NCBI GenBank assembly: GCA_002269645.1
Contig: NIVC01000025.1
Location: 248,001 to 312,000 of the forward strand
From: Macrostomum lignano
Lineage: Eukaryota
Length of the DNA: 64,000 bases
Direction: 5' to 3'
The notes under the pieces were generated by a model, which was given only the letters and a program-made list of their open reading frames with translations, searched no databases and was not told the origin of the DNA. Position 1 is the first letter of the stretch, and every line of letters begins with the position of its first letter. This document shows, in pieces, positions 39,458 through 63,367 of the stretch. The position numbers were made by a program, and so were the translations under genes.

Positions 39458-42400
39458 TCAAGGCTGAACAAACACGGTAGCCAAAGGATCGGTGGAAATA
39501 TGAATAGTATTATCATTATCATTATTATTATTATTACTACTAGTACTATTGCTAGGTTTAATATGGTTATTATTGTTACCGCTGCTGGTGCTGTTCCGAG
39601 TCCGGCTGGACTTTTCGCTCAGCCTGGAGATGACGAACTCGAAGCGGCCATGCAGCAGCCAGACCTCGTAGACGGCGAACACCAGCAGTGCCAGGCCGCC
39701 CATGGACACCAGGCCGACGTTCACCACGGTTGGCCGGCCGTCCAGCGGGTGCAGCAGCGACCAGGTGCCGAACGTGATGAGGAATCCGGCAATGAGCAGC
39801 ACGGAGATCAGGTGGCGGCTGAACGACAGGCAGGCCTGGTGATCGCAGGCCCGGCGGCCGCGGTGCCGTCGGATGAGCAGCTGGGCTCGGCACACCTAGG
39901 GGGAGGGGTGGGAGGGGCAGAGCGATTTATTTATTAAGCGACAGATAGCCAGACAAGGGACAGACAGACAGACAGACAGACAGACAGACAGACAGACAGA
40001 CAGACAGACAGACAGACACAGACAGACAGCCAGCCAGACAGACAGACAGACAGACAGACAGACAGACAGACAGACAGACAGACAGACAGACACAGACGGA
40101 CAGACAGACACAGACGGACAGACAGACAGACACAGACAGACAGACAGACAGGCAAAGACGGACAGACAGATAGACAGAGAGACAGACAGACACACAGACA
40201 GACAGACACACAGACAGACAGACAGACAGGCACAGACAGACAGACACAGAGACACAGACAGACAGACAGGCACAGACAGACAGACAGACAGACAGACAGA
40301 CAGACAGACAGACAGACAGACAGTACAATATCATCAAGAACTCCACACAGACCAAGCAGTCCCACACAAACCTGGCAGGAGATGATGAGACGCCGCCGGC
40401 CGCCCTTATACACGGAGTCCTCATAGAAGCCGGTCTCCAGACAGCTAATGTGCAGGTAGCGGTCCGGACAGTGACAGGGCAGCTTCTGCCAGCGGATTAC
40501 GCCGGGATTATCGTCCAATTGGATGCCTATTGTCCGGCCCTGTAGAAAGTACATTGAGAACATTTAAGTAAAAGAACAGTTGACAGTTTATCAATGCTAA
40601 CTAATCTCTTAGCATCAACCAAAATTAATCTTAGCTCCATCAGCTAGCCAGCCAATCAGAATGAATCTTAGCTCTATCAGCCAATCAGATTGAATCACAG
40701 CACTATCAGAGGGCCAATCAGAATGAATCTTAGCTCCATCAGCCAGCCAATCAAAACAAATATCAGCTCAATCAGCCAGCCAATCCGAATGAATCTTAGC
40801 ACTATTAGCCAGCCAATCGGAATGACTTTCAGCATCATCAGCCAGCCAATCAGAATTAATCTCAGCACTATCAGCCAGCCAATCAGAATGAATTTCAGCA
40901 CTATCAGCCAGCCAATCAGAATGGGTCTCAGCAGTATCAGCCAGCCAATCAGAATGAATTTCAGCTCTATCAGCCAGCCAATCAGAATGGGTCTCAGCAC
41001 TATCAGCCAGCCAATCAGAATGAATTTCAGCTCTATCAGCCAGCCAATCAGAATGAATCTCAGCACGCTACTATCAGCCAGCCAATCAGAATGAATTTCA
41101 GCTCTATCAGCCAGCCAATCAGAATGGGTCTCAGCACGCTACTATCAGCCAGCCAATCAGAATGAATCTCAGCACGCTACTATCAGCCAGCCAATCAGAA
41201 TGAATCTCAGCACTATCAGCCAGCCAATCAGAATGCAGCGAGCCTACTCACGTGGGAATTCTTCAAGCAGGTGTCGCACAGCGGGCACAAATCGTCGCAG
41301 AAGACGGTATCATTATCGAATTCCTCAAACGCCACGCTAGGCGACTGGTTATCGTCGCAGCTGCAGCCGTCTTCCCCCAGGGTTGCAATCTGGTGATTGG
41401 AGCTGACCGCATTCTGCGACTGCAACCGCTGCTGGTGCTGACGCCTGCGGCTTTGCAGGAGCTCCGATTTGCTTGTAAAGTTGCCACATTCGGATGCTGA
41501 ACTGCCAGCAGGAGGACCGTCGGCAGAGGCAACCAAATCAGCTGAGGCGTTCGAGGCTGGATGCACAGAGGTTTCGTCCACTCTTTTCACGCTGAATTGT
41601 CTGCGGAACCCGGCCAGGAATGCAGTTTGAATTGAATGAATTGCACGACTATGATTTTGAGCTCAATTGAACAGACTCATTCAATCCAACAGACGCACAT
41701 ATACTAGAATAACTAGATGGGCCACTCAGCACATTTGCGTGTAAACTACTTTCAGTTCAGTAGTAAGTTAAACTGAAGCATTTTAATGTATTTTTAAAGA
41801 CAAGGCTACTTCATTAACTCCCATTACCCCCGCTTAAACCCTCAAACTCCACACAGAACCTCTACCCCCGCCCCGCCACCCAATTTTTATTGCCTTTCTC
41901 GGTATTCCAGCCTAAAGCTGCCATGTACATTTCAGTGGACTGGCTAATGTACATTATGGCTGAACCAATTAGCCAGTTGTTTACGCCTGCAAGCTTGGGC
42001 TTCTGAACTTATCAAAGTCATTTCAGCTGCCTCTATTTTTATAAAATAGCTTATGTATTCTTCTTTGCTACTGAACTGAAAGTAGAAAGCTGTTTTGCTA
42101 AGCATATATGCCTGAGTGGTCCATCTACTTATTTCTAGTATCTCAGGCCAAGAAGCGTCTCAGAGTCATTTGCGTCATCCCAGAGTCGTTGCAGGTAACA
42201 CAGGTGAAATAGGAAAAAAGACGCTTCTCAAACGACGAGATGTCACGGTACAAGTCGCAAAAAAGTGGTCAAACAGTCATATTGAGGCGTTTTTTGTCTG
42301 CGACTCTGAAACGACTCTGGGGCCGTAGAGTCGTATCTGAGACGTGCCAGCTCTATTTAGTCTACTTGAGTCAGTAGTAAGTTAAGCGCTAACACAACGA

Positions 42401-61300: not shown

Positions 61301-63367
61301 GAAACTCCGACAAGAAAGTTGGGGGGGAGGGGGTTGCATAGCTGGAGGGAGAAGGCGAGGAAGTGCGCGAAGGCGAAGTCCCTCCAAACTGCTCCGGGAT
61401 TGGCTCTGCTATGCTGGGCGGGTCATGGGAAAGAAGGAATCTTCTTTCAACACCCGACAAGAGAGCGCAGAAGAGAAGCGAGGAGAGGAAGGGAGGTAGA
61501 AGCCTAAACTTCCAGCTTCAATCTCCCGTCACTTGTGTTCAATGTTCATTCAATCCCAATTGCATTTACAATGCAAAGCAAAGGGCATGTACGCCAACAG
61601 CCAAGCGAGCCGTTAACAGGGGTAGAGCAGCTGAATGAAGGCCAGCGCTGTTAACATTTTATATAGATTTCTATATCCAAGCAGCTTTTCTTTGAGCTCA
61701 ACAATAGCGTAGTCTCGTCGGAGTGGGGAGGAGGGAACAAAGATAGAAGTCAATCCTCTCTACCTATCAATACCTTTGTACTTGCAGCCTGCACTATGGA
61801 AGAATAGAATGCAGAGCAGGTAAAAGTACCTATTAGGCTATAGGTTTGATTGCATCCACAGCCATATTATTCATGACTTCAAGCACTGAAAATCCCCTCT
61901 CAGAGGCTTGTGTCGTGAGATGTATGTACAAGACTGCATGTATAGAAATAATAATTGTCAATTTGTCGCAATCGATTTTCTTTCATAAATTCAAGCGAGC
62001 CAAGCCAAGCTTAAAAGATATTCGTAATTATATCGTCCAGGACGCGAGGGGGACAGGCGATTAGCATATTATGCAAATAGGCTGGTAAGGATGGAGGGCA
62101 AGGACTGCCTGTTTAATAGTCAGCCGAAGTTAGACGCCGAATTCACGCCCCAGTAGCGACATAAAAACTGATTCAGGGAGAATGCGGGCAGGGGATCTCC
62201 TACTATCTTGCTAAAATACAAGAAAAAAGCAACAGAAAAATCGTCGTAAGTCGCTTCAACTTTACCCCGTAGATTAATAACGATTAAGATTAAAATAGCA
62301 TTTGAAAGCAAATAAAACGGCAAAGACAGAGATATAAGATAGATCAGGGAAAAACAGGCGCAAGACACTAAAACAAAAAAAGGATTAAGACAGACAGAGA
62401 CACTAAGACAGACAGACAGGCAGACAGACAGACAGACAGGCAGACAGACAGACAGACAGGCAGACAGACAGACAGACAGACAGACAGACAGGCAGACAGA
62501 CAGAGACACTAAGACAGACAGACAGGCAGACAGACAGACAGACAGGCAGACAGACAGACAGACAGGCAGACAGACAGACAGACAGACAGACAGACAGACA
62601 GACAGACAGACAAACAGACAGACAGACAGACAGACAGACAGACAGACAGACAGACAGACAGACAGACAGAAAGACAGACAGACAGGCGGACAGACAGACA
62701 GACAGAGAGACAAACAGACAGACAGACAGACAGACACTAAGACAGGCAGACAGACAGACAGACAGACAGACAGACAGACAGACAGACAGACAGACAGACA
62801 CTAAGAAAGACAGACAGACAGACAGACACTAAGAAAGACAGACAGACAGACAGACAGACAGGCAGACAGTGCAATATCATCAAGAACTCCACACAGACCC
62901 GGATCAAAGCCAAGCAGTACAAACAAACCAGACTCACTCATGCCGCAAATCAAGTCCCATTCGTCCTGAAGAAAAGCGCCGTAGTGGCCGCGCCTGGCAA
63001 TACTCTGCGGACAGCCCAGATTCAAGTCGATAGCGTCGCAGGCGTGCTGTGCCAGCTTGGCGGCCTGACAAAGCGTGTCAGCATCGTTGGCGCAGAACTG
63101 CACAATTAGCGGGCGATCCTCCGGGCAAGTCTGCAAGCTGAGCTGCCGATAGTTTTTATCCCTAACAAAAACGCTGGCGTGAAACATCGGCGTGTAGCAG
63201 AGCTGAGCGCCGTGCCGTCTGGCCAAGAGGCGCCAAGCCAGTTCGCTCTGGTCCACCATTGGCGCCAGTATGAAGCGCGGCGCGCCCAGAGTGTCATTGT
63301 AAAATTGCCAGGCCGCCGAAGATGGCGACGCCGAAGCGTCCGACGGGGTGTTCTCAGAATCAGATGA
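52363..63367 (-). CDS. DUS1L: tRNA-dihydrouridine(16/17) synthase-like, 5' exon outside the window
   Basis: Exons 63367-62938 ([50 protein letters not shown]), 54960-54513 ([28 protein letters not shown]), 53791-53582 (WLCQPY) and 52873-52363 (C-terminal CSECRNP..CKRCC..DCVGH). Phases 1,2,2 are consistent. Confidence 0.96.
53062..53523. repeat. 28-bp minisatellite (dispersed family) filling DUS1L intron
   Basis: gttgctgg[g/a]tcagcctcccagatcc[c/t]ca units. Confidence 0.95.
53820..54445. repeat. 25-bp minisatellite filling DUS1L intron
   Basis: gacaggtgtctcagataacaaggca units. Confidence 0.95.
58909..59970 (-). CDS. Intronless NHL-repeat (beta-propeller) protein, ~353 aa, nested in a DUS1L intron
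   Basis: ATG at 59970 (the track ORF begins at a non-ATG codon). NHL motifs [26 protein letters not shown] and [35 protein letters not shown]; minus-strand AATAAA at ~58587-58592. Confidence 0.88.
   Translation of the reverse strand: MRLAYSHEWPVHLKMTSEEASRNNRPREALHEIYDIAIALDTVGCVLSPRTGSSSIVRLLGNGEVAKQAGETDMPSPCLYVSAGFPCHSLLVFDQTGRHVADVTLSLHSAVHIAGVPANSEALLQRYHIGRILIHDRSLYVADCEFDFIYVCDLAGDVRHVISWPDELCAPMGMCVAFDRLYVCDSGHRRVRVYDLQSYRPVPGEDSPGYFTGIHTRGVCQCSLGPQQQQRLVTGDFESGHVLLLETHQRCSVRLSGLDSIGEPFALVPGPLPDTVFVSSSSMQGDHSVKLISFAITGQGDGEGRLLTFCGGQGSGPGQFNKPRGLAFDPTSLKLYVVDARNYRIQVFSVDKV
62388..62868. repeat. (GACA)n with cactaaga variants near a DUS1L donor site
   Basis: Direct reading. Confidence 0.96.

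Follow-up and report, generated by a model that had tools for sequence, protein, structure and literature searches.

Two unrelated genes of Macrostomum lignano share a short sequence and a (TGTC)n array at the start of an intron

Two unrelated genes of the flatworm Macrostomum lignano contain, at the start of one intron each, the same short sequence, which leads directly into a long array of the tetranucleotide TGTC. Both genes lie in a stretch of 64 kb (positions 248,001 to 312,000 of contig NIVC01000025.1, assembly GCA_002269645.1) that we refer to as ‘the window’. We call the short sequence the ‘head’; coordinates are those of the whole window, and both heads and both arrays are read on its minus strand. 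One host gene is DUS1L. The exon upstream of its copy of the head encodes a dihydrouridine synthase (Pfam family Dus), and its translation is 100% identical to the M. lignano protein P0001 of UniRef. The other host, gene B, comprises four coding exons by our reading, and specifies a RING-CH-like membrane protein. The RING-CH label comes from the UniRef title of a partial gene B model, P0122 (‘RING-CH-type domain-containing protein’); Pfam gave no family for gene B, and the reconstructed proteins, of 524 and 506 amino acids, are not on record. Gene B has a paralogue in the window, paralog A, on the plus strand. The features of the two loci are as follows:

39458-39895, minus strand: last exon of gene B, which runs from VCRAQLLIRRHRG.. 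as far as the stop codon and has its homologue in the last exon of paralog A
39896-39939, minus strand: acceptor side of the last intron of gene B, 44 nucleotides (nt), GCTTAATAAATAAATCGCTCTGCCCCTCCCACCCCTCCCCCTAG; not common to the DUS1L locus
39940-40323, minus strand: (TGTC)n array after head copy 1, 384 nt, about 98 units, directly adjoining the head
40324-40371, minus strand: head copy 1, 48 nt, GTTTGTGTGGGACTGCTTGGTCTGTGTGGAGTTCTTGATGATATTGTA, with the predicted donor of the last intron of gene B as its first GT
40372-40540, minus strand: gene B exon before the last intron, ending ..GGRRRLIISCQ; models P0121 and P0122 end here
54961-62937, minus strand: DUS1L intron 1, 7,977 nt, at an ancient position
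62388-62869, minus strand: (TGTC)n array after head copy 2, 482 nt, about 120 units, among them TCTTAGTG variants, directly adjoining the head
62870-62928, minus strand: head copy 2, 59 nt including an 11-nt insertion relative to copy 1; it starts 9 nt inside DUS1L intron 1
62929-62937, minus strand: donor of DUS1L intron 1, GTGAGTCTG (GTGAGT); exon 1 ends at 62938, phase 1

The resemblance is a real repeat, common to two unrelated introns. Its core, the 28-mer GGTCTGTGTGGAGTTCTTGATGATATTG, occurs exactly twice in the window, at 40326-40353 and 62872-62899 (both minus strand), and the two occurrences are identical to each other; none of 100 dinucleotide-preserving shuffles matched it, and 0 occurrences are expected by chance. 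Over the stretch that adjoins the array, 40323-40353 and 62869-62899 agree at 30 of 31 positions. The outer part of the head, GTTTGTGTGGGACTGCTTGG in copy 1 and GTTTGTTTGT-ACTGCTTGG in copy 2, agrees at 17 of 20, and relative to copy 1, copy 2 carries the 11-nt insertion CTTTGATCCGG. Homology stops at the same place in both copies, the G that precedes GTTTGT; upstream of GGTTTGT there is no similarity. Read on the minus strand, the layout of copy 1 is CAG|GTTTGTGTGGGACTGCTTGGTCTGTGTGGAGTTCTTGATGATATTGTA-(CTGT)n and that of copy 2 is ATGA|GTGAGTCTG-GTTTGTTTGTACTGCTTGGCTTTGATCCGGGTCTGTGTGGAGTTCTTGATGATATTGCA-(CTGT)n. A preliminary description of this DNA had reported one cassette with a (TGTC)n tail at the intron starts of two genes, the core identity of 30/31, the extra 11 nt of the DUS1L copy and the unrelatedness of the hosts, and all of this is upheld. 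An alternative alignment by MAFFT, which pairs the start of the gene B intron with the end of the DUS1L exon and its donor, reaches 11/16 identity, below the 17/20 of the alignment given here, and was not adopted.

A distance of 22.5 kb separates the two loci, which have the same orientation, and the sharing between them is one-sided. The 5' flank and the array are common to both; the 3' flanks are unrelated (best local match 11 nt, mostly array), and the sequences 3' of the arrays resemble neither each other nor anything elsewhere in the window. TTAAT, directly after both arrays, was considered as a common 3' end and rejected, TCTTA(G/A)T being a variant unit within the arrays. Since the acceptor-side sequences are unrelated, and neither a target-site duplication (TSD) nor an inverted repeat was found (see below), the shared unit is not a complete intron; what is repeated is ‘head + (TGTC)n’.

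The intron that houses copy 2 is old. Its donor agrees with the P0001 model and with the reading frame into exon 2 (start 54960), and the head begins at 62928, 9 nt after this true donor, with an in-frame (+9 nt) GTTTGT. In the orthologue from the coral Paramuricea clavata, a phase-1 intron interrupts exactly the same codon (ATT G|GTAAAT ... cag|TA AGT, versus ATG A|GTGAGT ... cag|TC TCG in M. lignano). The DUS1L intron therefore predates the flatworm and was not created by the cassette, and the comparison shows copy 2 to be a passenger inside it. P0001 itself represents a truncated DUS1L isoform, in which the exon-1 donor is joined to an acceptor at 62168 and 12 residues (62129-62167, minus strand) are added before a stop. 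The intron of this isoform is 770 nt long and mostly head and array; its acceptor lies 220 nt beyond the array.

At gene B the relation between head and intron is closer. The exon ends at 40372 (..TGC CAG), and the predicted donor, CAG|GTTTGT, is the exact start of the head. The last intron (40371-39896) has 476 nt, made up of the 48-nt head, the 384-nt array and 44 nt that end in a pyrimidine tract and AG. Its splice sites were placed from the gap-free protein alignment of A and B at this point (B ISCQ|VCRAQ, A ISCRSCCAQ) and from GT..AG, not from a transcript. The preliminary description had named the first GT of the cassette as the donor; the head does start at the donor, and the donor itself depends on this alignment. 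The only public models of gene B, P0121 and P0122, stop at ..LIISC, right before the array, probably because an earlier assembly broke there. Paralog A reads LIISCRSCCAQL without interruption at the site, so the earlier statement that it lacks this intron stands. Two features of paralog A are needed here:

32058-36529, plus strand: paralog A's own intron, 4,472 nt, phase 2, 34 coding nt upstream of the gene B site; splice sites predicted
36530-36600, plus strand: paralog A across the gene B intron site, continuous, ..RGHRQLIISCRSCCAQL..

Gene B is without paralog A's intron, as paralog A is without gene B's. Two introns 34 nt apart constitute a ‘near intron pair’, of which at least one position must be new or secondary; no outgroup homologue was found. 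Farther along paralog A (36740-36860, plus strand), a frame shift is needed to maintain homology with B, VNVGLV.. being followed by LLLFACAELRLLHGRFEF in another frame. This is either a sign of a pseudogene or an indel error of long-read sequencing.

How much the position of the heads means depends on how arrays are distributed in general. The window has GC-rich exons, AT-rich introns and at least 35 tandem-repeat arrays, in a genome of which more than 50% is repeats and 15% simple or tandem repeats (PMC5730564). Where donors could be read with confidence, we measured the distance from the donor to the start of the array:

10 nt: array at 22558-23402
16 nt: array at 40646-41235
23 nt: array at 20916-22112
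40 nt: array at 14476-15012
about 45 nt: array of the proteasome gene just outside the window
48 nt: array of copy 1
58 nt: array at 53817-54454
59 nt: array at 23721-24231
68 nt: array of copy 2
91 nt: array at 32149-32313
271 nt: array at 42825-43478, one case

The non-array part of these introns amounts to about 80-170 nt in total. Since intronic arrays usually start 10-91 nt after the donor, any sequence of ~50 nt on the 5' side of an array begins near a donor, and the proximity of the two heads to donors largely follows from the general pattern, with no special targeting needed. The preliminary description had stressed that both copies stand in the sense orientation within 10 nt of a donor. 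They do, but against this background the argument is a weak one. Almost every intron that we read is of the same make, short and swollen by one array of 0.4-3 kb with its own unit of 4-62 bp (also at L002:2345-3674), a pattern of which we saw no description in the M. lignano genome paper.

The same introns provide an example of a tetranucleotide array joined to a retroelement:

32314-35958, plus strand: decayed retroelement in the intron of paralog A, with open reading frames (ORFs) for reverse transcriptase (RVT_1, E = 4e-6, below the Pfam cut-off)

Arrays of (TCTA)n adjoin this element on either side (32149-32313 and 35959-36454), and so such junctions occur in this region. A GIY-YIG-like motif (CVYIGETG..), visible by eye in its downstream part, would place it among the Penelope-like elements. 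It is the only reverse-transcriptase element of the window (32.4-35.9 kb); its end is a (TCTA)n array, and it does not resemble the head.

A third copy of the head, exact or diverged, was found neither in the window, nor in the 6 kb beyond it, nor beside the other 33 arrays. In about 91 kb altogether (the window and ~27 kb of extra sequence), only 2 independent loci are seen. Three other (ACAG)n arrays of the window lack the head. Translated frames of the head gave 0 matches at E <= 10 in a database of 5.8 billion proteins, from which the window's raw ORFs are evidently absent. Exact-pattern scans of JGI metagenome contigs gave 0 matches in the first instance and 1 in the second, a chance match in a bacterial secA-like gene. 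One possible third member, the start of a PSMD12-like intron (CAG|GTTTGTTGTAGCTGCTT.., 22119-22135), was rejected as not significant: its motif search yielded 3 matches against 0.6 expected, with at least 3 in 6 of 100 shuffles, and its local-alignment score was 20, the null 99th percentile being 21. The start of DUS1L intron 2 (54455-54512, minus strand) has the same GTGAGTCT as intron 1; in it, TCTGTGTGGTGTCTG agrees with TCTGTGTGGAGTTCT of the head core at 12 of 15 positions, with a flank-scan score of 19, which is not significant.

The DUS1L copy does recur on a duplicate contig, NIVC01000659.1 (L003:7226-7590, versus 62388-62928 of the window), where the same insertion is present with identical junctions. 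The head there differs by one substitution, T>C, in the core, and the array is about 300 nt long, about 40% shorter. The insertion is thus older than that duplication, and the difference in array length shows how rapidly arrays lengthen or shorten once inserted. An empty site was not found, the duplicate contig being occupied at DUS1L as well. Judged by eye, the unique intron sequence near this copy shows scattered substitutions. Gene annotation is unequal between the duplicates; DUS1L is called on NIVC01000659.1 only.

We favour the reading that the cassette is a transposon-derived repeat, head plus microsatellite, that is a passenger in DUS1L and provides, or has replaced, the donor in gene B, and we assign it a probability of roughly 45%. 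The unit would consist of a unique head of ~50-60 nt and a (TGTC)n tail, and would most likely represent either the end of a microsatellite-tailed retroelement or a short derivative of such an element, itself non-autonomous. It would have inserted in the sense orientation into transcribed DNA, and a short tetranucleotide tail would then have grown at the site to 0.4-0.5 kb, in the manner of other arrays within introns. At DUS1L, the unit would have landed 9 nt inside the pre-existing, ancient intron. At gene B, it would lie at the exon/intron border, where, as the A/B alignment suggests, the G/T-rich GTTTGT at its start serves as the donor. One-sided sharing is the layout expected of an element with a microsatellite 3' end, and the arrangement of a retroposon—unique 3'-terminal sequence, simple-repeat tail, unrelated downstream flank—is present at both loci. 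Since the DUS1L intron is ancient, a simple insertion into an intron accounts for at least one of the copies.

Comparable elements are familiar. Tetranucleotide-tailed RTE-type elements are known in schistosomes (e.g. SR2 of Schistosoma, with a (TGAC)n tail), and microsatellite-specific long interspersed nuclear elements (LINEs) in arthropods; Waldo, Mino, Kibi, Koshi and Dong, of the R1 clade, insert into microsatellites. Like the microsatellite-tailed 3' ends of non-LTR (long terminal repeat) retroelements and short interspersed nuclear elements (SINEs), the unit has unique sequence followed by a short-unit repeat, one-sided sharing and a unique downstream flank. Its copies lie in introns, as those of microsatellite-tailed elements do, and an element with reverse transcriptase, bounded by (TCTA)n, is present in the same window. 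Its tail, at 0.4-0.5 kb, is unusually long for a LINE or SINE of this sort, although long arrays are the rule in M. lignano. The unit also resembles the microsatellite ‘families’ of Lepidoptera and other insects (mini-me or MINE-type), in which one flank is common to different microsatellite loci; unlike those, the common flank here coincides with the 5' ends of introns, once supplying the predicted donor. For one-sided flank sharing among insect microsatellite loci, the causes proposed are residence in a mobile element and recombination between repeats (PMC7043130), the same two that come into question here.

Other classes of element fit less well. The reverse complement of the head is absent beyond the array in both copies, and neither a terminal inverted repeat nor a TSD of fixed length, the marks of a DNA transposon or miniature inverted-repeat transposable element (MITE), was observed. 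RNA folds of the two heads are no better than those of shuffled controls (z = +0.76 and +1.59), and an Rfam search with the heads gave no match even at E <= 1; the stable, conserved fold or known family by which a mirtron or small nucleolar RNA is recognized was not seen. Without inverted ends, fold or Rfam match, the results argue against a DNA transposon or MITE, and against a structured RNA. At 48-59 nt, the head is too short for a promoter of the tRNA or 5S type.

Several observations weigh against the retroelement reading. The two copies have a common start base, in GGTTTGT, and thus show no variable truncation, unlike the random 5' truncation of a long element and unlike the usual behavior of a microsatellite-tailed LINE or SINE; such a start suits a short element whose 5' end is fixed. 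The independent copies are only two, so close together, with none in the extra sequence or beside the 33 arrays, and no longer or master copy of the head, no parent with this 3' end, is known. The TSDs that the preliminary description had suggested looking for were found at neither copy: no repeat of the 15 nt that precede each head follows its array, with the qualification that the ends of the arrays are fuzzy and a short or decayed TSD may escape detection. Of two TSD candidates, TGCCAG/TGCCGAG at gene B is explained by the Cys codons of a CxxC motif, also present in paralog A, and AGTGAGTCTG/AGTGTCTTG at DUS1L was rejected as too degenerate. Finally, the general pattern of arrays leaves one fact over: the head in gene B starts exactly at the first base of the intron, which would be a coincidence if it had simply inserted into an existing intron.

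Next comes an explanation that is somewhat unlikely in our estimate, namely that ectopic gene conversion or template switching, begun in the arrays, moved ~50 nt from one intron to the other, in which case only these loci and their duplicates would carry the head. Two copies so close to each other are improbable for any family that is not very abundant, unless they arose by a local event, and about 91 kb contains no third. Identity declines with distance from the array, from 1 difference in 34 nt beside it to 3 in 20 nt (plus the 11-nt indel) farther out, as expected of a conversion tract that began in the array, but this trend is based on a handful of sites and lacks significance. One-sided flank sharing of microsatellite loci has been described (PMC7043130), yet three other (ACAG)n arrays in this window have no shared flank. 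Against it, homology ends, to the base, at the exon/intron border of gene B, and local copying would need either selection or an RNA intermediate starting from the 5' splice site to account for that.

The coincidence of head and intron start has a direct explanation if the cassette is an introner-like mobile element, carrying its own 5' splice site (GTTTGT), that entered the coding sequence of gene B at a CAG|GTG protosplice site and so created the intron. In DUS1L, this element would have landed, harmlessly, in an intron that was already old. The gene B intron, which consists of head, array and 44 nt, opens with the first base of the head; paralog A has no intron at the site, the A/B alignment is gap-free there, and the near intron pair requires at least one new position. 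In DUS1L, the GTTTGT of the head keeps the frame of the genuine donor (+9 nt), and after the array stands TTAATCCTTTTTTTGTTTTAG, a sequence resembling a branch site, pyrimidine tract and AG. Pyrimidine-rich stretches with AG are frequent by chance in AT-rich introns, however, and the gene B splice sites were placed without a transcript. One of the two host introns is ancient, as the coral shows. The acceptor sides are non-homologous, with no TSD to supply an AG, and the repeat does not amount to a whole intron. Only two loci are seen, and no outgroup homologue was found by which gain in B could be distinguished from loss in A. In the literature that we searched, no report links Macrostomum with introners or intron gain, which also counts against this explanation. 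We consider it unlikely.

The comparison with known introners (e.g. of Micromonas, Aureococcus, fungi, dinoflagellates and some tunicates) is similarly divided. Like them, the cassette is a repeat at the intron starts of unrelated genes, in the sense orientation, with one host intron missing from a paralogue and with its own GT as the predicted donor, in gene B. Unlike them, it has two loci only, an ancient intron as one of its hosts, the 3' splice region outside the repeat, no TSD or inverted repeat, and a long microsatellite within the unit. The suggestion of an introner-like cassette, made in the preliminary description, is therefore kept alive by gene B, whose intron paralog A lacks, and contradicted by DUS1L, whose intron is ancient, and by the missing acceptor side. 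The check proposed there, whether host introns are absent from orthologues, divides in the same way, the DUS1L intron being present in coral and the gene B intron missing from paralog A. A bolder version holds that head + (TGTC)n is an animal introner, a mobile element with a functional 5' splice site that recruits a nearby pyrimidine tract and AG, and that it made not just the last intron of gene B but also, in consequence, many of the introns filled with arrays in this free-living flatworm. This we regard as more doubtful still.

It is very improbable, in our view, that the excised intron of gene B or a similar intron, or the 5' part of it, was reverse-transcribed into the DUS1L intron, although this would account for a homology that opens precisely with the GT of a 5' splice site. 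Homology in copy 2 does start at the base that corresponds to the first intron base in copy 1, and elements that bear reverse transcriptase are present in the window. The 3' part of the gene B intron was not copied, however, and the mechanism is rarely documented and without direct evidence. Least credible of all is chance similarity or an artefact of microsatellite-rich, long-read contigs, even in an assembly known as difficult and redundant (PMC5730564), given that the 28-mer matched in 0/100 shuffles and that the DUS1L copy was assembled independently, with the same junctions, on a second contig.

What the cassette means depends on which of these applies. Should it be an ordinary microsatellite flank of transposon origin, it is a matter of routine repeat annotation in a repeat-rich model flatworm, of use chiefly as a warning that sequence common to the starts of introns is no sufficient sign of intron gain. 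Were the gene B intron truly the product of the unit, it would be among very few transposon-driven intron gains in bilaterian animals, in a laboratory model with transgenesis in which splicing is directly testable. And if the unit is an animal introner, the unusual load of intronic arrays in M. lignano would be linked to ongoing intron gain. The more interesting lead may be the arrays themselves, and the short introns that are each swollen by one of them, starting some tens of bases after the donor.

Other features of the window concern its repeats and one further gene. A satellite family with units of 25-28 bp (..CAGTTGCTGGGCCAGCCTCCCAGATCC..) forms arrays at 1-74, 20916-22112, 53050-53527 and 63480-64000, in both orientations and without common flanks, which suggests that arrays, or seeds of arrays, disperse. 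A fragment of a piggyBac-type transposase lies at 1402-2194 on the minus strand (DDE_Tnp_1_7, E = 9e-16). The plus strand of the window is strongly asymmetric in composition (A 19701 versus T 15309; G 15575 versus C 13415), and all five (ACAG)n arrays have one orientation; both fit with the location of most genes on the minus strand. Within DUS1L intron 1, a gene for an NHL-repeat protein is nested in the sense orientation (58909-59970, minus strand; single exon, 353 amino acids). A search of representative proteins with its product returned only giant, multi-repeat proteins that match its one NHL repeat region (residues ~300-351) over and over, and no close relative of the whole protein. It is annotated in GenBank on NIVC01000025.1 (GCA_002269645.1), and forms a 2-member cluster at 90% with BOX15_Mlig018222g2 of contig NIVC01000659.1.

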